Made by a program: the position numbers and the translations under genes. The notes under the pieces are model-generated. The model was not told the origin of the DNA, did no database searches, and worked only from the letters and a program-made list of their open reading frames with translations. From Epithemia pelagica (taxonomy: Eukaryota > Protista > Bacillariophyta): a stretch of DNA of 64,000 bases. This document shows, in pieces, positions 3,001 to 34,634 of this stretch; positions within the stretch are counted from its first letter, which is position 1, and each line of letters opens with the position of its first letter. The stretch lies in contig OX337232.1 of NCBI GenBank assembly GCA_946965045.2, positions 1,798,001 through 1,862,000 of the forward strand, in the 5' to 3' direction.

Positions 3001-5786
3001 TTCTGCGGTGGAGGTGGTTTTGTTGCAGACAAAATCGCGGCATCCAAGTGCGAGTTGAGGAATGAAAGAATGCCTCGCAATCGAGCCAACTTCGCGAGGC
3101 TCTCTTGAGCATTGCTTGATTTTGCCACCTGCGGATCCGCATATGTCTCGCCGTCAATCTCGTTCTTCGTGCCCTCACAACCTGAACGAAGCTCCGTAAG
3201 GGCAACCTCGACAAGTTTAAGTCGGGTATCCATCTCATCGACACGAACGTCACATTCCTGCAACTTGTTGACTTTGGACCGTGCATTCCCTGCCTCAAAC
3301 TCTTGTACCTTGATAACATCCATCAAACAAGAGCACGCATGATCTTTCTCACTGAGAAATTTCTGCCGCATCAAGTCCAACTTTTCGGCTGGTACCACAT
3401 TTTTCTGCGGTGGAGGTGGTTTTGTTGCAGACAAAATCGCGGCATCCAAGTGCGAGTTGAGGAACGAAAGAATCCCACCCAATCGATTTAGCTTTCCGAG
3501 ACTTTCCAGGGCATTGCTTGGTTTAACAGTTTCGATTTCTCCTGTTCTTTCTTCTTCGAGGTCCACGGTGATTTCCTCGCAGCTCAACCTAAGATCCCCC
3601 ATCGCGGTTTCGACGAGCCGAAGTCTTGTCTCCATTTCGTCGACACCTAGGTCGCTCTGTTCCTTCAAAGTGTTGATCTTTTCGTGAGCTAGGTGAACCT
3701 CATTTTCTTGGCAGTGCAACATGTCCATCAAACAAGCGCAAGCGCTTTCCTTCTCGCTGACCAGCTGCTCTCGCATTGACTCCAAGGCCTTGGCAGACGC
3801 CTTCTCCGCCTTGGAAGGGCGGCGATCATCATCCTCAAACATTGCAGCATTTAACTGAGCACGAAGAAAACAGAGGATTCCACGAAGCTGATTCAACTTT
3901 GCAAGACATTTCTTCGCACTGGATGGTTGAACTTCGTGATCGTCTTCGGAGTCCAACTGGTTCTCTTCCTCAATAACCCTCGTCGCCTCTTCACATTCCA
4001 TGCGGAGTTCGCCCAGGGCAACTTCGACGAGTTTGAGCCTTGTTTCCATTTCTTCAACTCCAACATTTTCCTTGCCCTGTAATTTATTGATTGTGGTTCT
4101 GATGAGTTGTGCCTCGCCTTCTTTTAAAGCAATAACTTCCGTCAAACAAGCAAATGCGGTCTCTTTTTCAGCCTGGAAATGTTGCCTCATAGCATGCAAC
4201 TTCTCATCTGCTTCTTGTTTCTCTTCTTCACCCGTCCTCTGAACAGAGCCTTCGTCACAATCTGTGGATTCCAACTGTGAATGAATAATGCCGAGAATCC
4301 GACCGAGATTCTGTACTTTGCCATGATTTGTTTTGAAGTCGGGTACATGGGGGATATCGTCTTGCTTTTCCTCATCCTCTACTGACTGAGTTCTGTAGGC
4401 TGTGAGCTTTCTTGTCGCCTCCTCGTATTCCTCACCAATTTGTGACAGTGCCTTATCCACCAAGTTCAACCTTGTTTCCATCTCATTCAAACCTGAGCAG
4501 GTGGACGAGGCGTCACCATCTTGCGACATGTCACTTATGTTTGTCAGTTGCTTGCGCAATTGGTCAACTTCTTGTTTCTTCATACGGATAACTTCAGCCA
4601 TACATTCACATGAGTACTCTTTTTCCTGCAGCTTCTCTTGTTTTCCTTCATGGATCATATTACGCAAATCTGCTACTTCCTTTTCGTATGCGGCATTTTC
4701 GTCGCGTAGAGTCCTCATTACACCTTCAAACTTCTCTTCGTTGGAAGCCTCAGCAGCTTTCAACTGACCGTGGACATAGCCCAGGACTTCGCGGAGCCTT
4801 CGAACCTTGGCAAAACTACTAGAAAAGTCAATGTCGTCCAGTTTCTTTTGGTTCGAAGACGAGCGCGCCTCTTCAATAACCTTCCCCTTCTCTTCGTGTT
4901 CTTTCAACAACGCCAAAAGGGCTGTTTCTGTGAGCTTGAGTCGAACCTTCATTTCTCCAAACCCAGCACTTTCTGATTCGTCATCAGTACTCATTCTTTC
5001 TTTCAGTTGGGAGAGCTTGGAGTTCACAGCTTGGGCTTCTCTCAGCTGAAGCAGAATGACCTGCTTCAAAGAAGCGTAAGTGTCTTCTTTTTCTTGTAGC
5101 AAATGTTTCCTTCCAGAAGCGGCGGAATCCAACTTGCCCTCATACTCTGTGCGAAGGTCAGCAAGGGCTTGTCGGGACGCGGCGTTCTGCTTCTCAGCCG
5201 AAGCAAGCTTCTCGTATGCCACGGCGACCTCCAACTGGTAGTCCGCTTCGGTCTTGGAAGCAAAGAGCTGCGAATAAAAGTTGGAAACGATGACCTGGAG
5301 ATTTTGAAGAGTTGCAATTTCGCTTCGAAGGACATTTGGGTCAATATCTTTCACAATGTCCTTTATGCTTTCGGCTTGACTATCATCCTCACTTGCGTCA
5401 TCTTCAGCGGATGCGACCTCTACAGTCGCACGTTCAACTCTCTTGGCTCTTTCGTTGTATTTCTGGCGAAGATCGGACAGCGATTGTTCGACCAGCCTGA
5501 GCCTTGCGTGAATGTCACTTTCTCCCGGAGAACCGCTCTCAAAGCTAGTGACTCGGGCCTTCATACCGGCGACCTTGTTTTGGACTTGTTCGACTTCACG
5601 GGCTTGGTTCAGAAGGAACTCCTTGAGGCTCGTGAAAGCGCATTCTTTCTCTTCAATCAAAATCTGCTTCTGAAGGATGCTTTGTTTCTTGAAGTCGTCA
5701 AATTCGCTCTGAAGAGCGATGAGGGCTGCATTTTCCACGGAGCCCTTATCGCTTTCCGCCAGCTTTGGTTTCTGCGAGAAGCCCAT
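99..5786 (-). CDS. 1895-aa helical/coiled-coil repeat protein with ~12 copies of a ~130-aa repeat, one TM helix near the C-terminus and a short Cys-containing tail
   Basis: Single 5.7-kb ORF. Recurrent motif EM(E/D)TRL.L.E.AL...L..LRGI..FL.AQL.AA. Hydrophobic segment VTWATIIFLARTLFFGCMVTSMVYLV. Extra 5' exons cannot be excluded. Confidence 0.85.
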   Translation of the reverse strand: MGFSQKPKLAESDKGSVENAALIALQSEFDDFKKQSILQKQILIEEKECAFTSLKEFLLNQAREVEQVQNKVAGMKARVTSFESGSPGESDIHARLRLVEQSLSDLRQKYNERAKRVERATVEVASAEDDASEDDSQAESIKDIVKDIDPNVLRSEIATLQNLQVIVSNFYSQLFASKTEADYQLEVAVAYEKLASAEKQNAASRQALADLRTEYEGKLDSAASGRKHLLQEKEDTYASLKQVILLQLREAQAVNSKLSQLKERMSTDDESESAGFGEMKVRLKLTETALLALLKEHEEKGKVIEEARSSSNQKKLDDIDFSSSFAKVRRLREVLGYVHGQLKAAEASNEEKFEGVMRTLRDENAAYEKEVADLRNMIHEGKQEKLQEKEYSCECMAEVIRMKKQEVDQLRKQLTNISDMSQDGDASSTCSGLNEMETRLNLVDKALSQIGEEYEEATRKLTAYRTQSVEDEEKQDDIPHVPDFKTNHGKVQNLGRILGIIHSQLESTDCDEGSVQRTGEEEKQEADEKLHAMRQHFQAEKETAFACLTEVIALKEGEAQLIRTTINKLQGKENVGVEEMETRLKLVEVALGELRMECEEATRVIEEENQLDSEDDHEVQPSSAKKCLAKLNQLRGILCFLRAQLNAAMFEDDDRRPSKAEKASAKALESMREQLVSEKESACACLMDMLHCQENEVHLAHEKINTLKEQSDLGVDEMETRLRLVETAMGDLRLSCEEITVDLEEERTGEIETVKPSNALESLGKLNRLGGILSFLNSHLDAAILSATKPPPPQKNVVPAEKLDLMRQKFLSEKDHACSCLMDVIKVQEFEAGNARSKVNKLQECDVRVDEMDTRLKLVEVALTELRSGCEGTKNEIDGETYADPQVAKSSNAQESLAKLARLRGILSFLNSHLDAAILSATKPPPPQKNVVPAEKLDLMRQKFLSEKDHACSCLMDVIKVQEFEAGNARSKVNKLQECDVRVDEMDTRLKLVEVALTELRSGCEGTKNEIDGETYADPQVAKSSNAQESLAKLARLRGILSFLNSHLDAAILSATKPPPPQKNVVPAEKLDLMRQKFLSEKDHACSCLMDVIKVQEFEAGNARSKVNKLQECDVRVHEMDTRLKLVEVALTELRSGCEGTKNEIDGETYADPQVAKSSNAQESLAKLARLRGILSFLNSHLDAAIASEEKRRAPKKTAAEKAAEEKFHEMGEKFLGEKDSACTCLMEVIRVQEHDAQCLRNKVDQLKEGGKAGVNEMDTRLRLAEVALRDLRLECEESVEKGRTQSQNVDEPVQVSNTRNNLAKVNRLRGIICFLRAQLDAAVSDDAAPKKKSEVCSLTENEKSKIRECLSKIVSLQEETQPVRGKLSELKARKGDGIKEMETRFRLADTALSEIRDEFEGIVRAIEGKGDVTDANAITPAHVAQRDSKVNQLRGIIGFLSAQVNAAMPDDEVLDQEKKRAASVLAEIIVVQEEAELVQSKVNNLKNSSIGVEEMETRLKLAGSALSTLRSEFEGPQNPNANAGEAKLKQLRGLIGFLQAQVNSVTPEKSDVSESSEDECLKTVDRQEVLEERSNTSACLLELIRLQEVQAQLVRSKVTKLKEHGCGGVEELETRLRLAETGLSNLRSTAGEMATDPSQTSSRGSEDMKTTNSISARTMLGKLTQLRGIFGFLDAQSNAVLSEIASEKEANSRSKDRKTTTVYRPEDSLFRKMNDVLGSQYEEMVRLRLAVERKNSVTWATIIFLARTLFFGCMVTSMVYLVRGWESSMTPYNIMCSPALPGARITEQSGVHAAPFWVPTYFKSTVYESICRDVPQIRLEVKEGNFFITEVDTGATASTHVAPVEKIRRYPARFAYVTLSNILTFNSNGWHEVDLPWGDYDGRDEGDSGRLRLP
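2239..3466. repeat. Near-identical coding tandem repeat, 3 x 402 bp (134 aa) plus a partial copy
   Basis: tccaagtgcgagttgagg recurs at 2239, 2641, 3043 and 3445. Units differ at only a few positions. Confidence 0.95.
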
Positions 5787-14638: not shown

Positions 14639-16240
14639 CTACAACCACTTTGGTCGGATGTCGAACTCCTTCTCCCCCTTCTTATTCTTTCGGAAAGAAG
14701 GCGCAGTCCAGGAGAATCCGAGGTCGTTGAGACGTTGAATGCGTTCGTCGGTGATCTGACAGCGGTCACCTTTTTGCCGAAGGGTGTACTGGCAGCGCTG
14801 CTTCATGACCCATCGACCCAATTGTCGATTTTCCGGCCAGGCTTGAGGGACATTGCAATCTCCATGCAATCGCTTGTACTCCACCAACTCTTCGTAACGG
14901 TGTTCCCACCCGGCGGCAGGAGGAGCTACCTTCCATTGGAAACCGATACTGTTCAACTGAGCAATACGCTCTTCCGACAAAGTTGGACGAGGCTTGGTGC
15001 GGTTCTGAGGAAGAGCCCCCTGTGCTCGAAGCTGCGTCTCACGGTAGTTCTCTCGTTGCATCTTTACCCATTTGCCAAGAGGTGTAGACTGAGGCGCGTT
15101 GCAGTGACCATTTTCCCGCTTGTAAGCAACCAATTCTTCAAACTGACGCTTCCAACGAGCATCAGAATCGAACTGCTGTAAATCCCAAATGAAATCAATA
15201 TTACGAAGAATCATCAAACGCTCTTCTGTCAGATCAGCTGTAGGATAGCCCTTTTGCAGGCTGCTGTACTGGCTCCGCAACGAGGCTACCCACCGCCCGA
15301 GTGCCGACTTGTTGTCGACTGGAACACGACAGTGACCTTCCCTTGAACGGAAAGCCATGAGCTCGTACAGCATGTCATTGAAAGGCTTGATTGGTTCCGC
15401 TTTTCTTCGCGCTCGCTTGGTTTTTTCTGGACCTTCAGGGAGACCAGCTTCTGAGCTTCTACGAATATTGCCTGGATGACCCATTGCAGCGCTCAAATCC
15501 ATCGCAACATCCGGCGGTATTTCACCTGGATGATGATGATGCATGTCAGCGTCATCAATCTTGGGAAGGACAGAAACAATGTCAGCAGCTTTCATATCCT
15601 CTTCCGTTTTTAAAGCTTCAGGTTTCTTGTCTCCATCGAGACCTTGCGTGGTTGTTGCCACGGCTTCACCAGCTTCAACTGCTGCCACGGCGGCTTCACC
15701 GGCAATCGCAACAATATCAGCTTCCGTCGCTGTGGGAGTCTCGCCAATCATGTTAGAAGGTGCAGGCATTATATTGGAAGGAGAAGGCAGCACATTGCCA
15801 GGTCCATGTAGTATATTGGAAGGGGCAGGCATCACAGAAGGAGAGGCCATCACATTCGGGGAAGAAGGGTCGGCATGATTCGAATGGGGATGATGAGGAA
15901 CATGGAGTCCATGATTTGGTAATCCTCCACCAACTTCCCCATTTTCGTCATTTAGACCAATTTGATTAAGGATCTGACCAGGAACAACATCCTTCGTAAC
16001 ATCATCTACATTATGAGCGATATGATGCTGAGGATCTTGTGGTTGCATGTGATCGCTGGCGTGAGGAGCCTCGCGAGTCATGTGAACATTGGCTCCATGT
16101 TCTCCCTGGACCGCAGCAGCAATATCGCGGTCGGTCACAGCCGCAATTCCATTGTAATGGCCATCATCACCATGATGGCTGGATGATGGAGGGAGTGCAT
16201 TCGCATCCACACCCTCATTGACTTTAACAGACTCCTCCAT
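14639..16240 (-). CDS. Helicase-associated (HA) domain protein, three HA repeats after a disordered His/Pro-rich N-terminus
   Basis: Repeats of W...(F/Y)EEL..YK...G(H/D)C.VP....LG.WV..QR......L.EERI..L..IGF.W. First ATG at 16240. Confidence 0.9.
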   Translation of the reverse strand: MEESVKVNEGVDANALPPSSSHHGDDGHYNGIAAVTDRDIAAAVQGEHGANVHMTREAPHASDHMQPQDPQHHIAHNVDDVTKDVVPGQILNQIGLNDENGEVGGGLPNHGLHVPHHPHSNHADPSSPNVMASPSVMPAPSNILHGPGNVLPSPSNIMPAPSNMIGETPTATEADIVAIAGEAAVAAVEAGEAVATTTQGLDGDKKPEALKTEEDMKAADIVSVLPKIDDADMHHHHPGEIPPDVAMDLSAAMGHPGNIRRSSEAGLPEGPEKTKRARRKAEPIKPFNDMLYELMAFRSREGHCRVPVDNKSALGRWVASLRSQYSSLQKGYPTADLTEERLMILRNIDFIWDLQQFDSDARWKRQFEELVAYKRENGHCNAPQSTPLGKWVKMQRENYRETQLRAQGALPQNRTKPRPTLSEERIAQLNSIGFQWKVAPPAAGWEHRYEELVEYKRLHGDCNVPQAWPENRQLGRWVMKQRCQYTLRQKGDRCQITDERIQRLNDLGFSWTAPSFRKNKKGEKEFDIRPKWL

Positions 16241-17088
16241 GTTCAAAATACTATGTAGCAGGGGACACGAGAGGTTGTTGTTGGGAATCAAACTGCTTTG
16301 GTTGTGATTGCTGCGGTTCACGATAGGAAAACCAAGCGATCATTTGACGTTCTATGCACGCTTGCCAAACGGCCTCGCCCGAAAAGGCTTTCACTCTTCA
16401 AACGGCATGTACACTTTAGCAAATATAAGATGCCCAACTATACCATAAAATGTACCAATTTCCGTTAAGGGGCATATATAGTGTAGAAGTCACAGTCAGT
16501 CTATATGATCTGAAGTGTAGTTCTGTCGAAAAAAGACAACGACAAGATTTCAAATAAACAGATGGAGCTAGGTCCTCTACCTTACTCCTACTTCTCTATA
16601 TTAATACTCCCACTGCTCTTTACTCTCTACTACTCCTAGAAGCAACCTGACGGTTTGGCGCATGAGTCACGCCATAAATTCTGAGTCACGACCATGTTGC
16701 CGTATTTCAATGTTAAGCAGCGGAATCGACAGAGCTCGACGAGCTCTATCTGGTGATAACCTTTATTTTGAAAAAGATAAATGCCCGGTCGAGTTATTCA
16801 GGATTTTCTGGATTTCTGGATTCTGGCAAATATCTGGTCTACCTGACAATTTGGCACCGCGATAGCCCGTACTAATTTGGACCAAAATGTTTATACGGGC
16901 TATCACGTGAATTAACACGTAACTTCTCACTGTAACACTAATTAATCGGATTTTGTTCCCTATTCATTGTCTTTCATGTCCTTCATGGCTTTCTCAATAG
17001 ACAGGATCAAGTTCTTGTTGTTAATTCTACTGCTGGTTCCCTTCGAGTCGAGATAGATGCCAGTTCTGTTGGACAAGACACAGCGAGA

Positions 17089-21749: not shown

Positions 21750-24700
21750 CTAAGTGGGCCATGATGACTGGTCCGATGACGATGTCGTCATGGACCGTTT
21801 CCCAGATGAAGGAGCAAGAGAGGGAGTCCCACCACAGGAGAACTTTCCATGGGAACGGAAGGATACAGTCCCTCCGTTGGTGAAGTTACAAGACTCCCCA
21901 CTGGGGAACACAAGACCCTCGTCTTTGTTGGTCGTCACAATGATCTGTTTCTTCTTTTTCTTCTTGTTACTTGTGGGTGTCTTCGTGGTGATTGGTTCTG
22001 GTGGTGGCACAGGTTCATTTGAAGTACTGACGCTGGTCCACAACGCCACAAACGGCTTCGTCCAGAAATGATGATTCGTTGTCGATGTCAAAGCCTTTAA
22101 TGTCTTGGGGTTTGTTCCATGATACATGCTGTTGAAGTCACGCTCACGTTTCTCTTCCCCGTATTTGTCCGCCTTTTCCTGGTCGCTTGTCTTTTTCAGA
22201 ACAAGCACCAGGAGCGCAGTAAACATAACAGCATAAAGAAGGATCAAATCGCGGAGATACGACAAGGAGGAGTTGTTGGCAACCCCACTCTTGTCGCTGT
22301 TATTTCTTCCATCAGATTCTTCGCCTTGGTTTTTTGTGCTGAATGCATCAGGAAATAGTTTGACTGGTCTGACCTTGGTCATGTTCTTCCTGTTCTCGCT
22401 GTTTGAGCCACTGCCTCTTCTTCGCCGAGCTCCAAGGAGATAGTCCAAATCTTCTTGCATCAGCCCGTAGTCACCGGTTTTGTTGTAAACTTCCTGGGCT
22501 TGTGCCAAATCATCTTGGAGTCTTTCCAAACCGGATTTTGTGGACACTTCGTCACCCACATTCTCCACAAGTTCTTCTTCGTCCTCTACTTCTGTATGAA
22601 TATGATCTCGATTGTGTTCCATCCTTTCATCAACACTAAAGGTGTGCGGAATTCTTATTTCCTCTTCCTCAGTTTGAAAGTCGGTCGTGTCGCGAACCAC
22701 ATAAAACTCGTTGGCGTCGACATGCCGGTCCATGGTCTGTTGCTCGTGCAAGGTTGCCGTGGTGGTTGTGACCGTCGTCATAGTTGTATTCAAAGCCGTC
22801 ATGGGTGGTCCGACTTCTTGAATGGATTCCATTCGATACTCATGTTTCCTGTGCTCATCATTATCATGGAGCTCTGATGGATGATGATACTCTCGTGGTG
22901 GAACTTGTTGTCGTTGCTGATGCGGTGCGGTCATTTGCATACGAGCGTGTTTGCCACTACGCCGGGGCGTGGACCGTCGTTTCGGAGTCGCCATCGTGGC
23001 GGGAGTACGGCTGTGCATCAGTTGATGAAACCAAGCTGTCGTTTCGTCACCGGCCTGCTGTTGACGTTCCTCTGCGGATGATCGGTTCAGCAGCAAGGAG
23101 GGTGACATTGGATTTCCACTGCCCGAAGCCAGCTTTGATTCGGTTCCGGCCATGGATCGGTGCCCTCCACCGCGAGGTGTGGAAGCCGAAAGTGAGTGAT
23201 GGTAGGCTTCCAGTGAAGTCGGATGGCGACCAATTCCTCCTCCAGGTGGCATTGGGATGGACGATTCCATCAATCGGGTATGATTGAAGGAAGTTTCGGG
23301 CAAGAATGAGTTAGAGGGCATGAAGCCTGTTTCTCCATGAGAAGGAGGGGCTCCAGGGTCAGATGTGGTGACCAGTGCCCCACCATTGCGTTCCGGGTAT
23401 TCCTTTGGTTTCTTCTTCTTGCTAGTCATGTTGATGTTGATATGGGATGGTTGCATTTCTTCCAAAAATGGCTGCGTTCCGTTTTCTTTGTCTGGTCGTT
23501 GTGGAGTTCTGGGCTTGTTTGCTCCGGCGATTCGAGAAGTCGGCGGCTTTTGCATGGATGGTGACGGTGATTCTTCTTCCGCAAAGGTAAAGAGGGGAGA
23601 CGGTCGAGAAGCTGGTGCATAGGGATTGTCGTTCTTCTGACGTGCCAAGCCTCGCGAGCCACTTGTCCAGGGGGGAGTTGCTGTGGGACCGATGAGATTC
23701 CTGTGTGGTTGGTGGAAACTACTGTTGTGATGCTTGTTGACGTTGGTTCCTTGGCTGTAAAAGTTGGTGTTGTGATGATGGTGCTGATGATGATGATGAC
23801 TTCCATGTGTATTTTGGTGGGCACGAGCGTAATTGGATCGATGATATTCCATGGTGCGAATGGTTGATTCTCCACTCCGTTCATCAAATTCAATTTCTTC
23901 TTCTTCGTTGTGGAATTTGTACTGGCGATACAAGTCTTCGGAATGGCGAGGTGCGACAAGCTGTTCTTCTTCATTGGCTTCACAGCTGATAAAGAGACCC
24001 ACCAAGGAGGAGGGTGGAGACGAGGAAGAACCTCGACTGGCGGCAGCGGCAGCAGGGGTCACTGGGGCGGAGGGGGGACGAACCGCAGCAGGAACAGATG
24101 CTGTGGGGAGGGTCGGTGGCGGTGTCATCACGGGCGTGGGTGGTGGAAGTCGGCTTGGTGTTGTCGGGGTTGCTCGGGGCTGCATCATTGGCGTTGTGGT
24201 AGTGGCAGCTGTTGCGTTCATGGTGGTGTTACTGTTGTTCCCAGGACGGCCAGCCGCCGCAGCCTTTCGTTCACTGCGTTGCTGTTTCTTTTGTTCCTTC
24301 CAACGCATCAAGGCTTCTTGTCGTTCTTGTTGCTCCGAGGTTCCCACAGTAGGAGCACTACTACTAGGAGTAGGAGTTACTGCGGGCACAGCAGGGGAGG
24401 CATGATACTGCGGCGTTTGAGGCAATGGTCTGGAGGAGGACGACGATGCCAACACGGGTGTGGACGGAGGTACATGTGGTTGTGAGGGTGGTTGGATTTG
24501 AGAGGGCGGATGACGTGACGTTCGAGTTGCACCATTGGCACCAGCACTACTAGTAGTGTCGGTGCGTCTCGTCCGAGGTTTGGATCTATTTCCAATACCT
24601 CCTGGACTAGTTGCAGTCACACGCGGTGATTGAGGAACATGAGGAGAAGGATGAACCCCTTGTTGTGGTTGTAACTGCTGTTGTTGTTGTTGTTCTCGTA

Positions 24701-25271
24701 GTTGTTGCAGCTGCGGTGGACCGGGGGACATTGGTGGCATAGCATGACTGGCATGACCATTGGGAGTGGCTGTCATGGTTGGTGCTGGAGTGGCAGCAGC
24801 AATCCCTCCTGGTGCACTATTCATCATGGTGTTGTGCTGGTGGGGGTGGATCATGTTGTAGGGATTGTACTGATGATTTTCGCCATTTTGAGGTGTGGTT
24901 GTGGTAGCCGCAACAGCAGTCGAAGGGGTGTTATTGTTGGTGGTGTTGCGCAAGTAGATACATGATTGTCTAACAAAGACTCCAGAATTGGGTATAGTAG
25001 TGGTAAAGTATTGAACGCCTTCGACCGTGCCTGAGTTCTTGCCCTGCGAGGCGGAACTTCCTGTTAAAATGACTCCAACCCAATCACTCCCTTCCGCGAA
25101 TTCCACTTGACCCAAATAGGCCACTCGACCTTGTGACAAGGGCTGATTCTTTCGTTTCACCCAAACGGCTGCGCCTAAGTACAACCATCCAGACAATTCG
25201 GACCAACTGCTTCCACCAGTTGGAGACGATGATTCATTATTTTTTTCACGGGCAGATGGAGAACCCACCAT
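21750..25271 (-). CDS. CAP-Gly domain protein with long disordered region and a C-terminal TM helix
   Basis: GRVAYLGQVEFAEGSDWVGVILT...GKNSGTVEGVQYF...GVFVR. TM LILLYAVMFTALLVLVL. 3.5-kb ORF; hidden in-frame introns possible. Confidence 0.8.
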   Translation of the reverse strand: MVGSPSAREKNNESSSPTGGSSWSELSGWLYLGAAVWVKRKNQPLSQGRVAYLGQVEFAEGSDWVGVILTGSSASQGKNSGTVEGVQYFTTTIPNSGVFVRQSCIYLRNTTNNNTPSTAVAATTTTPQNGENHQYNPYNMIHPHQHNTMMNSAPGGIAAATPAPTMTATPNGHASHAMPPMSPGPPQLQQLREQQQQQQLQPQQGVHPSPHVPQSPRVTATSPGGIGNRSKPRTRRTDTTSSAGANGATRTSRHPPSQIQPPSQPHVPPSTPVLASSSSSRPLPQTPQYHASPAVPAVTPTPSSSAPTVGTSEQQERQEALMRWKEQKKQQRSERKAAAAGRPGNNSNTTMNATAATTTTPMMQPRATPTTPSRLPPPTPVMTPPPTLPTASVPAAVRPPSAPVTPAAAAASRGSSSSPPSSLVGLFISCEANEEEQLVAPRHSEDLYRQYKFHNEEEEIEFDERSGESTIRTMEYHRSNYARAHQNTHGSHHHHQHHHHNTNFYSQGTNVNKHHNSSFHQPHRNLIGPTATPPWTSGSRGLARQKNDNPYAPASRPSPLFTFAEEESPSPSMQKPPTSRIAGANKPRTPQRPDKENGTQPFLEEMQPSHININMTSKKKKPKEYPERNGGALVTTSDPGAPPSHGETGFMPSNSFLPETSFNHTRLMESSIPMPPGGGIGRHPTSLEAYHHSLSASTPRGGGHRSMAGTESKLASGSGNPMSPSLLLNRSSAEERQQQAGDETTAWFHQLMHSRTPATMATPKRRSTPRRSGKHARMQMTAPHQQRQQVPPREYHHPSELHDNDEHRKHEYRMESIQEVGPPMTALNTTMTTVTTTTATLHEQQTMDRHVDANEFYVVRDTTDFQTEEEEIRIPHTFSVDERMEHNRDHIHTEVEDEEELVENVGDEVSTKSGLERLQDDLAQAQEVYNKTGDYGLMQEDLDYLLGARRRRGSGSNSENRKNMTKVRPVKLFPDAFSTKNQGEESDGRNNSDKSGVANNSSLSYLRDLILLYAVMFTALLVLVLKKTSDQEKADKYGEEKRERDFNSMYHGTNPKTLKALTSTTNHHFWTKPFVALWTSVSTSNEPVPPPEPITTKTPTSNKKKKKKQIIVTTNKDEGLVFPSGESCNFTNGGTVSFRSHGKFSCGGTPSLAPSSGKRSMTTSSSDQSSWPT

Positions 25272-26216
25272 TACTCCCCTCTCCAATCAAACGACGAAGG
25301 TAGAAAGGTATCAATGGGAGGATTCGAGCAGTGCCCTCGCACACACAAGGCAACAAACACGACAAGGTGCAACAATCAATTCCTCGTTTTGCTATTGGAT
25401 TCCGGAATCATGAAAAAAGATGACAGATCTCCAACTACTGTCTGAGTATCTTTTTGATGTTTGGCCCACTGTTCTCGTTGGAATCGCTGAGCAATCCATA
25501 TACAACCGGCGCAATATAATAATACAGGACCTCCTCAGTTGGCCTCTCTCACTCGTCGTCTGTTCAAGGTTTCTGTTGTTGTAACAGGTGAGAATGGCAG
25601 ATGGTCCATCGAACTCGAACAACCACCACCACCTGCAATTCTGGGGTGCAGGTTTGTACCACCCCTCCTTTTTCTCGGTCGTGCAGGCGCGCCAAGCACT
25701 CGTTCCTCACACAACCTTCCCGCCAAGAGGGGCGACCACGTAGCGCTCCCCCGGTCCCAACATTTTGTGGTTCAGTCTCGCCGTTGATGGGGCAGCGGTT
25801 CCGCCGCGAAACAGTTGTTGCAATCCAATGGGCAATGCTCATTCAAAAGGCTATTGATTTTGGGGCTGTTATGAATTACAACTTTTATTATTGCCTTGAT
25901 AGACCCAAATCTTTTGGATCCTCGAGACTCTGGCTTTGGAAGTACATTTTAGCGAGCCATCGATATCCATCAGGCGTGCTCTCCATGCTCCAAAAACCTT
26001 CCAGTCGCATCTTTCAAGAACATCAGACGTGGTTTAGTCGCCTTAGACGCTTTCAACGCGAGTTCATAGTTCTAAATTTTCTGCAATCATCAGAACAAGT
26101 TCCATCATGTTGTGTTTGAGATTCTATGTGAATGATAACTGAATGTTATTTGGTTCCATCCATGATCCATGTATCAGTAGAAAGTTCAAGTTTTCTTTCT
26201 TGTCAGCGCAGCCATC

Positions 26217-27893: not shown

Positions 27894-28624
27894 TGAGTGA
27901 GAGAGAAGTTTGTTGGAACGGCTTTGAATCACTGCAAACGTAAACACTCGAGGTAGGTAGACTGGTGGAATTTGGATTTGGACCTCTGTGAGTTGAAACA
28001 TGGATCGACGCATCTTTGACACAACGTCGTGTTCAGAGTCGCAAAGGGAATCGCTGTATCATCTACCTTCCAAAGGCAGTGGACAGTACCAAATCGTTAA
28101 AATTGTCGGTTCTGTGAGAGCAAATGACAAATGTTTGGATGTGAAAAGGGTCCACACGCACCGGTATGGAATGCTGTCTAGAGATGATGCTCCTAGGGGT
28201 CTGTGGTCTGTCGATTCGACCAAGAGAGGCCCCAACAGACACAGAACTAAGGGCAGTTCCTAGAGGTGGGTCATTGGTTCCGGCCAAGCGGATCGTCGGT
28301 TAAGACGTCATGGGATGCTCTTTTGTTGGAAAGGAAACCCGTCCATTCTCACTTTCCTCATCTTGCGAAACTCCACTAAAGTTAGAGGAACGGTCTGTAC
28401 AAAAGATTGGTTTCTAACCATAGTCAACATAGCACTTCTGTCGATTCTGTTCCCGCCATTTGAATTTTAAAATATCCCCTGTGGTTGATGTGACAGGTTC
28501 TCTCATTTTTCATCCAAAGTCCAAGTCCACAACGGAAATTATATACTGAGGTCATTGTGGTCAACAACACTGCGACGAGGGGAAGCCATTGTGGGGAAGA
28601 GAAAGAGCGTCATTGCAAAAGGAA

Positions 28625-31600
28625 ATGAGTGCATCTTCTTCAGCGTCGAGTACTCCGTCCCCATCCTCACGAAAGGTTGCACACCAACGAGGATCTTCCA
28701 ATCCGCCCGTTCGCACCTCGGGTTCCAATCATGGAAGTACTGGCAGTCCTCGTTCCACCTCCAAACGACCGTCGCCACCCTCACCTTCCTATTCCACAAC
28801 GTCCGGTGTGTCTTTGGCGTCCTTGCTGTCCACGTCCTTCCAACTGAATGTGGGCACTCCGGTTTGGATTCGTCGAAAAGGACAACCCCTGTTGGAAGGA
28901 GAAGTGGCCTATCTTGGTCCCGTCGAATTTGCTTCTGCTCGAACCAAACGCACTTTGACGACAGCCAGAGACCAGAAGGAGTCACCGTCCGCACACGTCG
29001 ACTCCGAAGAAGAAGAAGATGATGACCAAGACGAATGGGTGGGCGTTTGTTTGACTGGACCTTCGGTCGAACAGGGCAAACATTCCGGCACGGTGCATGG
29101 CATTGTCTACTTTGAAACTCCATTGCCACATCAAGGATTGTTTGTTCGACGATCCAACATTCAATTGCGTACCACAGCGGCCACTGCCGCGAAACTTCAC
29201 CAGCAGACAAGCACTCCCAATGATTTGTGGGAGTCTCCCACGCGAGACGCACATTTGGTGCCGGATCGTCAACCGCAACACAATGGTATAGACAACCATG
29301 TGGCAACATCAGCAGCAGCTGCAACACCCTCCTTACCAACACTTTCTCCCACCAAACCTGCAGCAGTGGAGAGACAAACCATGTTCCGGACTCCATTGCA
29401 TCCCTCCCATCTACCATCCGGACCGGGAGACGACGACAACAACAACTGCAGTAACAATGAAAATAATCCAGAGACTATGCATTTTGCAAATGGGCCACTA
29501 CAGGGCCTCGATACTGCCACCAAAACAACAACGAGGGCTTTTGACTTGCGAGACCCTGACAGACGTGGCGTACACAACAATGAAAGTTTAACGGAAGGAA
29601 GAGCACGACGAAGAAATGATGAAAATGGCAATGATCCCGACCATCATCAAGACATATCCTTGCTTGGTAGGTGTCAAATCCTATGGTTCGTCCTGCTTGT
29701 GTGGATGAGTTTGGTTCCACCCCTGCTCTTTATCCTAGCTTTGTTGGTACCGACGTCCTGGCAGCAGATCCTGGATGGTGGTTCAGATCCCAGCCGTCGA
29801 TTTTGGGAAAAGCTCACGGCAGGCCTCTTGTTGGGCCATGTTGGCGCCAGTCTCGGTCTGTTGCTTCCTCTGATGGTCTCTTCTGGTGGTCGTAGTAATC
29901 GGACGACATTGTCGGTCCAGACCGGTCGCATCTCGGCCGTCTTGAGTGCCTGGATGGGTTTGTGGATTCTTCTTGTCACCCTTTGGTGTGGTGTTCCAAC
30001 GACCAGTTCTTCAAAGAATGATAGTGACGGTAATGATGTAGAGTATGGTCCTGCATGGATCATTCTACTAAGTGGATCTGCCTCGTCCCTCTTGTTGGCC
30101 ATTCTGGCACTCATGGTCTCCTTTTGGCCGACGGGTCCGCAGCAAGGACGATCCAATCATTTTTGGACACGTCACTCGTATCCCATTCTCAATACCCTTT
30201 CGCACCAAAACGGCAACCATGGTACGACTGCCGAAACTATCGGATCCTTGACCGAACCCCTTTTGTCACCACACGAACCACAACCTTTATTGCACGAGAC
30301 GAGTCACCACCAGGACTGGCAAGACGAACCCTTGGACGACGAAGAACAACAACAGGGAACCTCTGCGGCAGATGATTGTCAAACATCACAAATCAATGAG
30401 ACGGATGCTGCTGCCCTGGAGGAAATTCCTAGTGGAACGAGTCGAGTTCGAGGGACACGGCGATTGTTACAACTTGCATCGTCACAAGTCTTGTATTTGT
30501 ATCTGGGTTGCATTGTCTTGTTAATCCGATTGCCCTTTTCCTTGGCCATTCCTCACTTTGTGTCCACGACACTGGCTGCCCTGGGCCGGGGCGCGTTTCA
30601 TGAAGCCCGGCAAGAAATTCTTTCCCTCTTTGTATTGGGTTCCATTGATGCCGCTCTGGATTTCTGGTGCATCTTTTTGTTTGGCTATGCCAACCAACGG
30701 ATTGTCCGTGGAGTCCGATTGGATCTCTTTCATCGACTCTTGCACATGGAAGTGGCCTTTTTCGATTCGCACAACTCGGGTACTCTCGCCTCCCGACTCA
30801 ATAGCGATTGTTCCGAAATGGCCGGTGATTTGACCTGGTTCTTTCGCTTCAGCATTGAATCCGTCGTCCGCATCACGGGCATTACGGCTTACATGTTGGT
30901 TCGGAGTCCCAAATTGGGGGCCTGCGCCCTGAGTATTGTTCCCGTCGTGGGAGTGATCAACAAACTCTACGGCGATTGGTTGGCCCGCAATGCCATTGCC
31001 GTACAAGATGCCTTGGCCGAAGCCAATGCCGTGGCGCAAGAAGCCCTGTCCAATGTACGGACTGTCATTGCCTTTGCCGCTGAAGATTTGGAGGAGGAAC
31101 ATTACCAGACAAAAATTGATCGACAATTCCATCTCAATGTCCAACAACTGTTTATGCAAGGTGTCTATTACATGGCTATTTCGACGTTTTTGATCAACAC
31201 CTTTGTTCAATCGGCGCTCCTTTATTTCGGGGCCTATCTCATTGAGCGAAATGGACTCACAGCCGATGTCCTATTGGCATTTATGCTGTATCAAGGACAA
31301 CTTCAGAATGAAACCTTGAATTTGTTTCAGTCCTACAGTTCTTTGGTCAAGTCCTCGGGAGCAGGCGACAAAGTGTTTGCGTTATTGGATCGGCAGCCCC
31401 CTCCTCCGGCCATGGGGTCCACGGAACAACGACAACGACGACGTGCGAGAAACCAAACTTCTACCGATGACGTGCCCTCGTCCACGGGATACAATTTGAG
31501 TTTGCAAACTGTCTCGTTTGCCTATCCGAGTCGACCATCTCATCCCGTCCTGGACCAAATGGTTTTGGATATCCCTCAAGGATCTACTGTGGCTCTTGTG

Positions 31601-32614
31601 GGACCGAGTGGGTGTGGCAAATCAACGGTATGTATACGGCCCTTTTTCTCTGTTTCGAGTTATGGAAACTCATTTTGTCCTCCTTGCGAATGTCACGCAC
31701 AGGTTGTCAATTTGCTTCAACGATTTTATGACCCAATGGAAGGTCAAATTCTTTTGAATGGAAGAGACCTTCGGTCGTACGACTTGCGTGAGCATCGACG
31801 TCGCATTGGTGTGGTTTCGCAAGATGTAGGTTCCTAGAGTGTTTTGCTTCGGTTATGACACGTGGGAGGAGCGTTGCTGGAATGATTTTCTCACCACAAA
31901 ATCCGTTTCTGTTTGTCTCAAGTGTGTCTTGTTTGACGGAAGCATTCTGGAAAATATCACTTACGGTAGCAATCGTCGTCGCCGGGGACCCAACGAATCC
32001 AATGGTGCTGCTGTGGTTATGGACGAAGTCGAAGAAGCGGCGAGGTTAGCCCATGCGGATGATTTCATTCGTCAAATGGCACATGGGTATCACACAGTTG
32101 TGGGGGAGAAAGGAGTACAATTGTCTGGGGGACAACGGCAGCGGATCAGTATAGGTAAGAAACATTCCGGGCGCTCCTGTGTGTGTTACGTTGGATAATT
32201 CCAGGGACCGATCTGATTCTCCGGACTCATTGGTTGTACTCACATATGTATGCTTTAGCTCGGGCGATATACCAGAGACCGTTGTTGTTGATACTGGATG
32301 AAGCCACATCAGCTTTAGACCGAGAATCGGAACAAGTGGTGCAACAGGCTTTGGATGACTTGTTACAACGACAGCACGTGGAGCATCAAGAGCCACTGAA
32401 TACACTTTCGACAACGACGACGACATCAACAACGACAACTGTGGTCATTGCCCATCGACTGCATACCGTCGAGAATGCTGATTACATTGCCGTTTTGGAG
32501 AATGGAAAAGTTGCAGAATTTGGCCCCCCACAAGAGTTGTTGTTACTTCGCAATGGCAAATATCGTACACTGGTGGAACAAGCTCGTCATACAGGGCGCA
32601 TTGCAGAATCGTAA
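28625..32614 (+). CDS. CAP-Gly::ABCB (TAP/ABCB9-like) half-transporter; exons 28625-31627, 31703-31825, 31923-32154, 32259-32614
   Basis: CAP-Gly ([11 protein letters not shown]...WVGVCLT...[13 protein letters not shown]...GLFVR) in the same ORF as the ABC TMD ([17 protein letters not shown]) and Walker [10 protein letters not shown]. Splicing restores [43 protein letters not shown]. Confidence 0.85.
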
Positions 32615-32915
32615 ACGTTCGATTTCATGCTCCAAATTGTCTGGGAGGCTTGAAGCCAGGACGTTACCCACAATCTAAAATGGATGAACCATCTGGAAAA
32701 GTTTCGCTGGCTTTCCTCGTCCAACATCCAACATGTCATGAGGGAAACGTCTGTTCTAGCCAGAATGTTTCTACTCTCGAGACGACGGCCAACAGGACAA
32801 CTTTCGCAGGACAAAGATCGAAAAGACTGTAGAACTCGTCTTACTAATCCCTAGTGCATTTGTCCACTCGCACTACTAGAACATTCCAATAACTCACAAG
32901 GCACAATAGGTATTA

Positions 32916-34259
32916 TCAAGATTTTGTATACGTGTTGAGACCGGTTTTAGGGTCCAGGTTGGTGACAGCATCTGCTGAAACGGCAGACGCCGGTGACGAT
33001 GGTACCAATACCTGTGGCCCTGGCCCAGCTTTGGTAACGTAGACATACTGGACTTTGCCTGGATCCGGTGTCCCTTCGTACGATTCCGGCATGGTATCTA
33101 CACAGTGCTTGAGCAAGCTTGCATCGGCTAATGGAGACGAGGTTGCCTCGGGTGCCAAAATGCTGCTGTCACCCGAACGAATGTACGGCTTGGCGGAGGG
33201 AGACGAGGGCTCCGAGGGTGGCGCTGGAAAGAAATGAGATACCAACTGCACAATTTCCGTCAAGTATGGTTCAGTGGTATACAAGACGGCATTGGGACCG
33301 GCATCAAAGGTATAGGCCACGCGCAAGGCTCCATGAAAGTCATTGTAGGCAGTAATGAGTCGAATAATGTCCCGACTGGTGTCGTTCAAATAGAAAATCG
33401 GTGGAAAGGTATCCAAGCAGGTGGAATGAAATTGATTGGAATCTTTCATGGTCAAACAGGCAAAGGTTTCAAAGTCTCGATTGATCCAGGCTTGTTCCAT
33501 TTCTTCCATTCGACGAGGAACGACATGTTCGGAACGGTATTTCAAAAAGGGACTGGTTTTCACCGACGTTTGCATACCGGCCGTGGAACTGGTATGCTTT
33601 TTCTGCGCCGACACAACGAGAATCACGGCCCGCAATTCCGGCCAATGGTTTTCGGCATTGGGTCCAACAGGTTCGGCAAGACTATCTTTCCAATCATTGA
33701 CGGCTGTCCCGGCACGCCATGCCACAAAACCACCAAACAAGGACCGACACGAACTTCCCGATCCTTGTCTCGCAATGGTGGTCAACTCACCCGGAAAGCT
33801 CTCCTTGGCTTGGTACAATTCGGTCAAGGCGGCTACCAAGGCAGCATATCCGGCGGCAGAAGAGGCCAATCCTGCAGCTGTAGGGAAGGTATTGTAGGAA
33901 GAGACATGGACCTTCCATTCTTGCCACTCGGCGACCGTGACCAAGACTTGACTTCCGTCCTTCTTTTCGGTCGCCAAACGCTTGACGCCGTCGATACAGG
34001 CACGAAATCGTTTGTGCGTGTTAGCACCTTCATCTTCTTCTCCATTCAGCCACAGCCGATCTTGGGTGAACAAAGGGCTGGCAGCAACCGTAGTGACGGC
34101 ACGAAGATCAGTCTGATCCAACGTGACGGACAGAGACGCATTGGTAGGCGTATTGAATTCCACCGATGCCTTGCCCCAATATTTGATGACGGCAATGTTG
34201 GTCGGCGCCGTCACCGTCGCCATGAACATTTTCGGAGCTTCTTTGTCCTCGGTTGCCAT
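32916..34259 (-). CDS. MVD: Diphosphomevalonate decarboxylase
   Basis: APTNIAVIKYWGK, NTFPTAAGLASSAAG, ARQGSGSSCRSLFGG, DSNQFH, YTFDAGPNAV. Confidence 0.97.
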   Translation of the reverse strand: MATEDKEAPKMFMATVTAPTNIAVIKYWGKASVEFNTPTNASLSVTLDQTDLRAVTTVAASPLFTQDRLWLNGEEDEGANTHKRFRACIDGVKRLATEKKDGSQVLVTVAEWQEWKVHVSSYNTFPTAAGLASSAAGYAALVAALTELYQAKESFPGELTTIARQGSGSSCRSLFGGFVAWRAGTAVNDWKDSLAEPVGPNAENHWPELRAVILVVSAQKKHTSSTAGMQTSVKTSPFLKYRSEHVVPRRMEEMEQAWINRDFETFACLTMKDSNQFHSTCLDTFPPIFYLNDTSRDIIRLITAYNDFHGALRVAYTFDAGPNAVLYTTEPYLTEIVQLVSHFFPAPPSEPSSPSAKPYIRSGDSSILAPEATSSPLADASLLKHCVDTMPESYEGTPDPGKVQYVYVTKAGPGPQVLVPSSPASAVSADAVTNLDPKTGLNTYTKS

Positions 34260-34634
34260 ACTTCTCTCTTTGTTTGAGTCAACGAAAAACAATTATCCGA
34301 TCTATAATAACCAACACAATAGAGACTTGTAACTTGTAAGGTTATGATCTTGGATGAAATGAGGAATGAGGAGGTGACGTATCCAATCTCGAGCGGTATC
34401 ATCATATTCATGGATCGGAAAATGGATAGCAAGAACTATTCAGCGTCATTGGTAAAATGTAATGAGCAAGATGAGGTGTGAATCTCATCATTGTGTGATC
34501 CGACGACGGTCCCCCGGCGTGTTGTCCCTTCGCCATGAATTAGGGGGAGGCTCCCACCGCCCCCGAAACCAAACGGATCGAAAGGATTTTTGTTCATCAC
34601 CCTATGTCAGGCGCCAGATCGAAGGAAGACTCTC

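Follow-up and report, generated by a model that had tools for sequence, protein, structure and literature searches.

In TAP1/TAP2 and TAPL (ABCB9) a four-helix TMD0 precedes the core exporter, and in TAP and TAPL this TMD0 acts as a hub. Half-transporters of this type work as dimers. We know of no TAP-family protein with a cytosolic domain ahead of its TMD0 nor, more generally, of ABC transporters bearing cytoskeleton-binding domains. CAP-Gly domains bind the C-terminal EEY/F tails of tubulin and EB proteins, with groove residues (Phe, Trp, Phe-Val-Arg) holding the C-terminal aromatic side chain of the bound tail; some have different ligands, CYLD being an example. The CAP-Gly heads of CLIP-170 and p150Glued belong to soluble plus-end or motor-complex proteins, in which they are displayed as dimers on flexible or coiled linkers. 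CLIPR-59 (CLIP3) combines ankyrin repeats and CAP-Gly at Golgi and endosome membranes, on which it is held by lipid modification. CLIMP-63 and STIM1 (by its SxIP motif) are integral membrane proteins that bind microtubules through unrelated elements, and neither is a transporter.

The window analysed here, 64,000 nucleotides of an Epithemia pelagica contig (OX337232.1), contains a genuine, expressed, single-copy gene encoding a 1237-residue ABCB-type half-transporter with a CAP-Gly-bearing N-terminus. Its layout of TMD0 and core is that of the TAP proteins, while its CAP-Gly domain shares fold, groove residues and a basic Ser-rich flank with the heads of CLIP-170 and p150Glued, its best sequence and structure matches. 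Unlike those heads it is a covalent part of a polytopic membrane pump, has the motif GKHSG and carries a 33-residue loop insert. It resembles CLIPR-59 in placing a CAP-Gly domain at a membrane, but CLIPR-59 is not an integral transporter. The likeness to CLIMP-63 and STIM1 is functional only, in the working principle proposed below of a cytosolic tail that couples an organelle membrane to microtubules. The features of the gene are as follows.

28517-28624, + strand: 5′ untranslated region (minimal extent), from the start of the spliced X4 contig (record 14) at 28517
28625-31627, +: exon 1 (1001 codons) with N-terminus, CAP-Gly, linker, TMD0, ABC TMD and Walker A; from ORF, GT at 31628 and Pfam
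28625-28831, +: basic Ser/Thr/Pro-rich N-terminal region, residues 1-69, by composition
28832-29182, +: CAP-Gly domain, residues 70-186, from Pfam (PF01302), AF2 and Foldseek
28931-29029, +: 33-residue loop insert with acidic run, residues 103-135, between the FA and WVGV strands
29075-29089, +: GKHSG, counterpart of the GKNDG tubulin-tail-binding motif, from alignments
29183-29644, +: disordered linker, residues 187-340, with one M-F-R-T-P motif and no Pfam match
29645-30121, +: TMD0, four TM helices (residues 341-374, 389-419, 427-455 and 475-499), from hydropathy, loop charges and AF2
30122-30442, +: acidic disordered linker between TMD0 and core, residues 500-606 (pI 4.4, 17 D/E, pLDDT about 50)
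30443-31504, +: elbow helix and six-helix ABC exporter TMD, from Pfam (ABC_membrane) and AF2
31601-31627, +: Walker A (GPSGCGKST) at the end of exon 1, from sequence, Pfam and P0003 alignment
31628-31702, +: intron 1, 75 nt, GT..AG, in frame and without a stop, absent from the X4 contig
31703-31825, +: exon 2, NBD as far as the Q-loop (ABC_tran 25.8 bits; tiles onto P0003)
31826-31922, +: intron 2, 97 nt, GT..AG, absent from the X4 contig
31923-32154, +: exon 3, NBD with the LSGGQRQR signature, ending in phase 1, from ABC_tran and tiling onto P0003
32155-32258, +: intron 3, 104 nt, GT..AG, absent from the X4 contig
32259-32614, +: exon 4, Walker B (LLILDEA), D-loop, Thr-rich insert, H-loop and stop TAA, from sequence reading and P0003 alignment

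The interval 28625-32614 of the forward strand is thus one four-exon gene of 1237 codons, as first reported. A long ORF spans 28589-31837, with its first ATG at 28625 and an in-frame TGA upstream at 28547-28549. The splice sites, read directly from the sequence, define three introns, every one GT..AG, and the four exons align consecutively, with no gaps or overlaps, to the intron-free orthologue P0003. Since the window exons were searched singly, this natural full-length protein served as a stand-in for the whole. A public cDNA-derived contig from run X4 runs from 28517, unbroken through CAP-Gly and transporter, and lacks exactly the three predicted introns; a single X4 contig covers 28517-31626 continuously, while 28384-28516 has no X4 cover. 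The initial annotation, which had proposed a CAP-Gly domain, TMD0, ABCB TMD and NBD in a single gene with three introns completing the NBD, was right on each of these points. It had also envisaged transcripts that start downstream of about 29200 or splice out the CAP-Gly; the spliced contig retains the domain and starts upstream of that position.

The protein belongs to the ABCB-type (type IV exporter) half-transporters, with a six-helix TMD and one NBD in the same chain. ABC_membrane matches residues 627-895 with 160 bits, over profile positions 3-272 of 274, behind an elbow helix at residues 607-622. ABC_tran runs over exons 1-3, and the NBD motifs are all intact: Walker A, Q-loop, LSGGQ signature, Walker B with its Glu, and H-loop. 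PDB matches of the core include ABCB1, ABCB4, ABCB10, ABCB8, TAP and ABCB9. The TAP/ABCB9-type label originally applied is not supported, the core being about equally close to ABCB10, ABCB1, ABCB9 and TAP2. ABCB10 matches as well as the TAP-like proteins or better, both for the full core (ABCB10 341 bits, ABCB8 309, TAP2 279, ABCB9 277) and for the TMD alone (ABCB10 120.6 bits, ABCB9 112.2, TAP2 108.5). The TAP-family model TIGR00958 is the best NCBIfam model for P0003, but it matches the core only and its 486.2 bits lie far below the cut-off of 874.6. One relative does bear the JGI label ABCB9.

The extra membrane helices, previously put at about four, number exactly four by hydropathy and in the AF2 model (58-sequence alignment, pLDDT 87-96). 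Fold searches with this TMD0 returned nothing below E 0.04 (Foldseek against the PDB) and generic four-helix bundles only (VIA wide search, Z ≤ 12.7), so kinship with the TMD0 of TAP or TAPL cannot be claimed. The loop at 418-439 is positive and that at 457-479 acidic. With four helices the N-terminus comes to lie on the same, cytosolic, side as the NBD, and the predicted topology places the CAP-Gly domain in the cytosol.

The TMD0 can be aligned across a diatom-wide family of TMD0-ABCB half-transporters, within which the fusions nest. Its other members, such as Fistulifera solaris FisN_10Lh277, have orthologous TMD0, core TMD and NBD (core 56-82% identical), and share with the fusion both the elbow helix and a WP motif that follows helix 4. 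Their length is 700-930 residues and their N-terminus lies at the first TMD0 helix or immediately ahead of it, with neither the CAP-Gly domain nor the 340-residue cytosolic extension of the fusion. Judging by their names none has been functionally characterised, a Nitzschia inconspicua member being called ‘efflux ABC transporter permease/ATP-binding protein’. In the E. pelagica genome the fusion is the only member of its ABC family, the next match being 31% identical.

The survey of diatom orthologues called for in the initial annotation finds the fusion kept in a subclade of raphid pennate diatoms, against a wider TMD0-ABCB family that lacks the domain. Nine protein clusters in two clades carry it, from separate genomes, transcriptomes and metagenomes and including transcripts of Entomoneis paludosa and Amphora coffeaeformis. 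At least three species transcribe it. Two orthologue transcripts, L001 (with an upstream in-frame stop) and L023, contain one complete ORF each, and a 1283-residue fusion ORF is uninterrupted on a 9-kb contig. The two fusion clades each have 100% SH-aLRT support, and the likelihood is higher when they are constrained as one clade (AU p 0.91), so that a single gain of CAP-Gly is not rejected on these sequences. A tree of the CAP-Gly domains only (91 columns) is neutral on a shared origin of those in clades A and B; in it, clade A joins the ankyrin type described below (92% SH-aLRT, unstarred).

Comparison with the L003 orthologue shows the CAP-Gly domain to be a clear island of selective constraint. 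With dS saturated (values exceed 1.5 or cannot be computed), omega values are rough, and constraint was judged from the contrast in dN between regions. The domain is 67% identical with a dN of 0.25, compared with a dN of 1.22 in the fast-evolving N-terminal region (residues 1-69), 34% identity and a dN of 0.85 in the linker (residues 187-340), and 84% identity and a dN of 0.12 in the ABC transmembrane core. With this constraint, the nine clusters and transcription in at least three species, the suggestion of a recent chimeric gene falls away: the fusion is neither recent nor an artefact.

Assignment of the CAP-Gly domain itself is straightforward. CAP_GLY (PF01302; gathering threshold 26.5) scores 40.1 bits on exon 1, 44.8 on the N-terminal piece and 52-56 in the fusion orthologues. 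The AF2 model has a core pLDDT of 92-96, and its top 42 Foldseek matches in the PDB are all CAP-Gly domains (probability 1.0, target TM-score up to 0.87), those of CYLD occurring among the fold matches. By sequence, the dynactin p150 domains are the best PDB matches. The groove residues F, W, K and F-V-R align with p150Glued, and the hydrophobic ones (Phe, Trp, Phe-Val-Arg) are invariant in the 11-13 aligned diatom sequences. The region ahead of the domain is 58% S+T+P, with seven K/R and no D/E (pI 12).

The acidic insert noted at first reading is real. Its ten-residue acidic run is part of the 33-residue loop (residues 103-135, pLDDT 56-62), which is retained in the spliced X4 contig with no joint visible there and in which one allele has E131 replaced by D. 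It is found only in this species: the other eight fusion proteins lack it, as do related CAP-Gly proteins. It could interfere with binding or mimic an acidic tail.

On this evidence it seems reasonably probable that the CAP-Gly heads bind the EEY tails of α-tubulin and so couple the pump, or the compartment that bears it, to microtubules. Three features add to the plausibility of such tethering: the topology is cytosolic, the groove residues are conserved, and both α-tubulin genes of this genome end in GEEY. Since half-transporters are dimeric, each pump would display two CAP-Gly heads, on flexible linkers of about 150 residues, and these would engage the tails with the help of the basic flank, as in CLIP-170 and p150Glued. 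Through this binding the pump-bearing endomembrane compartment would be held or positioned along microtubules or, alternatively, the pump would be concentrated where microtubules touch its membrane. Counting against tubulin binding are the acidic loop insert and the motif, which is GKHSG and not GKNDG, with Asp replaced by Ser at position 4. The Asn to His change at position 3 has been described as a conservative replacement (PMC3806363). Relatives have GKHSG, GKHDG, GKHNG, GKNNG, GKNDG or GRNDG, and a literature search for GKHDG found nothing.

Other partners for the heads were considered. The EB1-like protein encoded in this genome has ...ALDEE at its end, without an aromatic residue, so that the classical EB1 route is doubtful and EB1 is not favoured as a ligand. 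An internal ligand was rejected, as the transporter has no acidic-aromatic C-terminus: the tails read ...TGRIAES or ...GRIDAE, and those of CAP-less orthologues are similar. Complex prediction pairing the CAP-Gly domain with the C-terminal 60 residues of the α-tubulin of this genome, run without controls, gave a score of 0.10 and a mark of 0.34, which is evidence neither way.

A different role for a real fusion is possible, though somewhat unlikely. Here the CAP-Gly domain would be a general peptide-binding or sorting module that recognises the tail of another protein or, in the manner of CYLD CAP-Gly domains, a partner that is proline-rich or ubiquitin-like, and that regulates the pump or directs its trafficking, replacing or adding to the hub role of TMD0 in TAP and TAPL. 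The drifted motifs (GKHSG, GKHNG, GKNNG, GRNDG) would fit such a role, as would the RLTG.S strand, unusual in replacing the normally acidic ELDEP, and the presence of the same CAP-Gly type in an ankyrin-repeat protein of this genome. Short linker motifs conserved in both fusion clades (M-F-R-T-P; M-x-R-T-P-x-P) likewise suggest further partners. However, clade B fusions retain the canonical GKNDG, the groove for a terminal aromatic residue is conserved throughout, and the basic Ser-rich flank and EEY tubulin tails are both present. In addition, although the fold search also retrieved CYLD structures, it is not CYLD but tubulin- and EB-binding domains that match best in both sequence and fold.

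It is improbable that an internal start gives a CAP-less TMD0-ABCB pump as the main product of the locus, with the CAP-Gly form a minor or conditional isoform. Most diatom orthologues do begin directly at TMD0, and neither transcript starts nor isoform ratios can be read from assembled contigs; transcription may also begin at a second, internal site and yield a CAP-less pump. Against its being the main product, one frame runs uninterrupted from 28625 with no break in X4 coverage, full-length single-ORF transcripts occur in two other species, the CAP-Gly domain is constrained while its flanks drift, and the genome contains no CAP-less paralogue. An origin of the fusion in faulty assembly or annotation, or as a recent chimera without function, is highly improbable: the N-terminal 600 residues are mostly of low complexity and the precomputed, prokaryote-style gene calls (P0001 and P0002) ignore introns and extend into intron 1, but the same DNA is present in four independent runs and in a spliced cDNA-type contig, the architecture recurs in nine clusters from independent sources, the adjoining gene is syntenic in a second species and selective constraint is visible.

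The claim that no ABC transporter with CAP-Gly had been described holds, in that our literature search found no description of the architecture. The same search returned nothing on the ABC fusion, its syntenic membrane-protein neighbour, or the cystinosin-type and MFS CAP-Gly fusions described below. The proteins are already present, unnamed, in the EukProt and MMETSP sets, but the wide cataloguing that the initial annotation had allowed for was not seen. An ESM Atlas feature search with exon 1 returned plain ABC_membrane clusters and no CAP-Gly plus ABC cluster, a null that is uninformative because only large clusters were searched.

On a broader reading of tubulin tethering, raphid pennate diatoms may have come to use CAP-Gly repeatedly as an N-terminal add-on to integral membrane proteins. 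The CAP-Gly type of the ABC fusion also heads the adjoining single-pass membrane-protein gene, and a second type heads a cystinosin-type transporter, of diatom origin, and an MFS transporter. On a tentative and, we think, unlikely extension, the ABCB pump, the cystinosin-type PQ-loop transporter and single-pass or tail-anchored proteins, together with the MFS transporter, would directly couple membranes to microtubules at vacuole/lysosome-like or silica-deposition compartments. To our knowledge, few transmembrane links between cytoskeleton and silica are known in diatoms. The diatom cytoskeleton is thought to shape silica via membrane-spanning proteins, according to a proposal quoted in PMC5647440. 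The ABC fusion, its syntenic CAP-Gly neighbour and the cystinosin-type and CAP-Gly-MFS fusions are candidates for such links and, if the extension is true, would supply the long-postulated transmembrane connections between cytoskeleton and endomembranes in diatom morphogenesis. If tethering is true, a pump equipped with a microtubule-binding head of its own would represent a novel means of positioning transport activity, or an entire compartment, in the cell. Related diatoms that have the same transporter family with and without CAP-Gly provide a natural experiment. The nearest relative of the transporter CAP-Gly (60-62% identity) is that of P0008 (L007), an ankyrin-repeat protein of this genome, which is likened to CLIPR-59 by its ankyrin plus CAP-Gly layout only.

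The ABC gene was read from the sequence as four exons separated by three introns of 75, 97 and 104 nt, each with GT..AG ends. It begins in a long open frame at 28589-31837, whose earliest ATG, at 28625, is the first possible start because of an in-frame TGA at 28547-28549. The coding sequence of 3714 nt specifies 1237 residues and a stop.

Features of the ABC gene and two neighbours (window coordinates, strand, description)
21750-25286, minus, upstream CAP-Gly gene: 1178-residue ORF, Pfam CAP_GLY 55.3 bits, motif GKNSG
28625-31627, plus, ABC gene, exon 1
31703-31825, plus, ABC gene, exon 2
31923-32154, plus, ABC gene, exon 3
32259-32614, plus, ABC gene, exon 4
32916-34292, minus, mevalonate-diphosphate-decarboxylase gene, convergent with the ABC gene

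Exons were searched separately, with P0003, a natural full-length orthologue free of introns, standing in for the whole protein. In Pfam, exon 1 matches CAP_GLY (40.1 bits against a cut-off of 26.5), ABC_membrane (160 bits, near full length) and already positions 1-26 of ABC_tran, which is carried on through exons 2 and 3. Aligned exon by exon, all four exons tile the nucleotide-binding domain (NBD) of P0003 with neither gap nor overlap, and Walker A, Q-loop, LSGGQRQR, Walker B with its Glu and H-loop are intact. The product is a bona fide ABCB-type half-transporter. Between D-loop and H-loop, exon 4 (window 32340-32450) encodes a Thr-rich insert of around 25 residues, an unusual site for low-complexity insertion in an ABC ATPase; P0003 and the genomic orthologue L003, from another species, have their own, differing versions.

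The protein begins with 69 residues that are 58% Ser/Thr/Pro, with seven basic and no acidic residues and a pI of 12. The CAP-Gly domain follows at residues 70-186; by sequence, the CAP-Gly domains of dynactin p150 match it best in the PDB. An AF2 model based on a 13-sequence alignment has a core pLDDT of 92-96, and when this model was compared with the PDB by Foldseek, every one of the top 42 matches was a CAP-Gly domain. Alignments show the groove residues Phe, Trp and Phe-Val-Arg to be conserved, and the domain passes the family tests for score, fold and groove residues. GKHSG replaces the canonical GKNDG; among relatives the motif reads GKHSG, GKHDG, GKHNG, GKNNG, GKNDG or GRNDG. PMC3806363 describes the exchange of Asn for His at position 3 as conservative. 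The acidic run remarked on in the initial annotation is real and forms the end of a 33-residue, poorly ordered loop insert (residues 103-135, pLDDT 56-62) that is absent from every relative compared and kept in a spliced contig of the public sequencing run X4. A disordered linker of 154 residues follows the domain.

Hydropathy places four hydrophobic TMD0 helices at residues 341-374, 389-419, 427-455 and 475-499, modelled by AF2 with pLDDT 87-96 (58-sequence alignment). Helix 2 is followed by a positive loop (+3/0), helix 3 by an acidic one with an N-x-S sequon. Since the number of helices is even and the 340-residue N-terminus has no signal peptide, the CAP-Gly domain is predicted to be cytosolic, on the same side as the NBD. 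Residues 500-606 form an acidic disordered linker, followed by an elbow helix and the exporter core. The TAP/ABCB9-type label originally given to the transporter is not supported: the best NCBIfam model, TIGR00958, scores 486 bits where its cut-off asks for 874.6, ABCB10 scores equal to or above ABCB9 and TAP2, and TMD0 fold searches gave generic helical-bundle matches only. The likeness to TAPL is one of layout, without demonstrated orthology.

ABCB half-transporters are dimeric, and the behaviour of the CAP-Gly heads of CLIP-170 and p150Glued, which have basic Ser-rich flanks, is established. From these two facts we infer a two-headed, tubulin-binding pump: by analogy, the dimer would display two CAP-Gly heads on flexible linkers, the heads would bind tyrosinated alpha-tubulin tails, and such binding would couple the pump's membrane to microtubules. 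We hold this coupling to be somewhat better than an even bet. Both alpha-tubulin genes of the genome end in ...GEEY, offering possible ligand tails, and an EB1-like ORF ends in ...ALDEE. The main rival, rather less likely, is that the domain binds a non-tubulin partner or has a sorting role.

DNA of the ABC gene was found in four public runs of one study, in genomic form in three and spliced in X4, which from its intron-free contig appears to be a cDNA-type run. The 5.6-kb X4 contig starts at 28517, is unbroken to 31626 and from there on leaves out three stretches of exactly 75, 97 and 104 bases, each bounded by GT..AG; cover is absent over 28384-28516, an intergenic gap. In this contig the CAP-Gly is retained and all three introns are removed. 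Within the gene the contig has one uninterrupted frame; by itself it is no proof of one molecule, because it continues into the convergent mevalonate-diphosphate-decarboxylase gene. As it spans both genes, their transcript 3' ends must overlap or nearly do so, within some 300 bp (32614-32916). Independent support for one transcript comes from the 3.9-kb transcript-like contigs L001/L002 (P0003) and L023 (P0037, Entomoneis paludosa MMETSP1065), each with a single complete ORF from CAP-Gly to NBD end; L001 has an in-frame stop upstream of the ATG. L024 carries a clade-B member (see below) in an uninterrupted ORF of 1283 residues, and L003 has the same exon layout as the window gene. We judge it improbable that a CAP-less pump is the main isoform. 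In exon 1 (window 28680-30835) 12 single-base differences separate runs or alleles, six of them protein-changing (A19G, E131D, S241P, V359M, H532Y, I665M); none touches conserved CAP-Gly core residues, and E131D falls in the loop insert.

A word search with the N-terminal half retrieved three proteins with CAP_GLY and ABC_membrane. Searched with the core only, the ABC family proves diatom-wide at 56-82% identity (Fistulifera, Nitzschia, Cylindrotheca, Pseudo-nitzschia, Seminavis, Thalassiosira, Skeletonema, Attheya and others), the survey of diatom orthologues suggested at the outset thereby placing the CAP-Gly fusion in nine clusters. A typical member has 700-930 residues and begins at TMD0. 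The window gene is the sole member in its genome (60.5 Mb, 23 contigs), the next match being 31% identical. In the core tree, CAP-Gly carriers fall into two clades (SH-aLRT 100% for both), nested in a group of 36 sequences that has 99% support. Clade A comprises the window protein, the gene call P0002, P0003, P0038 and the Entomoneis paludosa protein. In clade B a fragment that lacks its N-terminus joins Amphora coffeaeformis, P0074, P0060 and P0084. Trees were quick searches with SH-aLRT support only. A tree holding the carriers together has a log-likelihood 29.6 above the quick free tree and an AU p of 0.91, so that a single gain is not rejected, and an M-x-R-T-P-x-P motif in the extension is common to both clades. 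Entomoneis, Surirellales and Amphora are near neighbours in diatom phylogenies, which would fit one gain. Two gains or a domain exchange may instead have taken place, because in a CAP-Gly-only tree, from a short alignment, the clade A domain groups with ankyrin-type CAP-Gly at 92%.

In its form M-[E/D/F]-R-T-P-x-P the motif recurs in linkers or N-termini of P0003, P0037, P0038, P0060, P0065 and P0084 and at window 29381-29395; it is the extreme N-terminus of three clade-A proteins and occurs in one or two copies in linkers of both clades. Some copies read T-P-L-P and agree with the SxIP pattern that marks EB1-binding motifs. The adjacent CAP-Gly gene and P0037, P0003 and P0038 have a further motif in common, E-R-x-x-A-L-E-x-W-[K/R], the window transporter being without it.

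The suggested dN/dS check against the L003 orthologue found dS saturated, so the dN contrast between regions is used alone: N-terminus 1.22, CAP-Gly 0.25, linker 0.85, TMD0 0.52, second linker 1.0 and core 0.12. By this measure the CAP-Gly is a conserved island within a fast-drifting extension.

Of 1.84 billion cluster representatives searched with a diatom CAP-Gly profile, 5896 matched at E <= 0.001. In the 150 top-ranking ones, an ABC core accompanies the domain in P0037, P0038 and P0084 only; beyond them there could be other fusions whose CAP-Gly domains are more distant. The same 150 include CAP-Gly with an MFS_1 transporter (P0247), CAP-Gly with a PQ-loop protein (P0262) and several proteins that start with CAP-Gly and have one hydrophobic helix late in the chain. 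P0262 (L025:6001-7831, on a 21-kb eukaryotic scaffold) has its CAP-Gly N-terminal to a cystinosin-type PQ-loop transporter whose nearest counterparts are the cystinosins of diatoms (Cylindrotheca, Nitzschia, Fistulifera); when the 120 best relatives of this transporter part are compared, P0262 itself is the only one with CAP-Gly. The N-terminus of animal cystinosin is luminal, which makes the topology of the P0262 fusion less certain. Its CAP-Gly is of a second subtype, shared with the MFS_1 fusion (P0247/P0301) and bearing 'NDPV...LEGV', which a split with 97% support sets apart from the ABC subtype in the CAP-Gly-only tree. More than once, therefore, CAP-Gly has become joined to a polytopic membrane transporter, with at least two such cases in diatoms. 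A faint hint that the pump's membrane may be vacuolar or lysosome-like comes from the parallel with cystinosin and from the layout of TMD0.

Full-text searches for CAP-Gly with ABC transporters, diatoms or membrane anchoring gave incidental co-mentions only. Fusion proteins are present, unnamed and with precomputed Pfam matches, in EukProt, MMETSP and metagenome sets. The architecture has thus been catalogued silently and, as far as the literature searched shows, is apparently undescribed, which leaves the supposed novelty standing for description and not for presence in public protein sets. The domains and the transporter class are known; their combination is unreported, conserved and expressed.

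Six CAP_GLY matches occur in the genome. Besides the transporter and the gene 3.3 kb upstream of it, they are a TBCB-like protein, a CAP-Gly protein of 1490 residues, a protein that combines CAP-Gly with ankyrin repeats, and one weak match. The ankyrin-repeat protein (P0008, 609 residues, L007:790-2619, G000:C5 at ~2.77 Mb) has an internal CAP-Gly that is the closest relative of the transporter's, at 60-62% identity, and resembles CLIPR-59 in its ankyrin + CAP-Gly layout, the comparison being of layout alone. The upstream gene encodes an N-terminal CAP-Gly of the transporter's diatom subtype, a very long disordered body rich in Ser/Thr/Pro/Gln and, close to the C-terminus, a single hydrophobic helix. 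In L003, too, its orthologue (CAP-Gly 84% identical) is located upstream of the ABC orthologue and is transcribed away from it. L003 lacks the two genes that flank the ABC gene in the window, those for a mitochondrial carrier and for mevalonate-diphosphate decarboxylase. The two CAP-Gly membrane-protein genes are a conserved head-to-head pair whose intervening genes differ. Between its CAP-Gly genes, at 3363-4280, L003 carries a DDE transposase (Plant_tran/DDE_Tnp_4), and downstream, at 14879-16627, a reverse transcriptase of the copia type (RVT_2); such mobile elements may account for the loss of local synteny.
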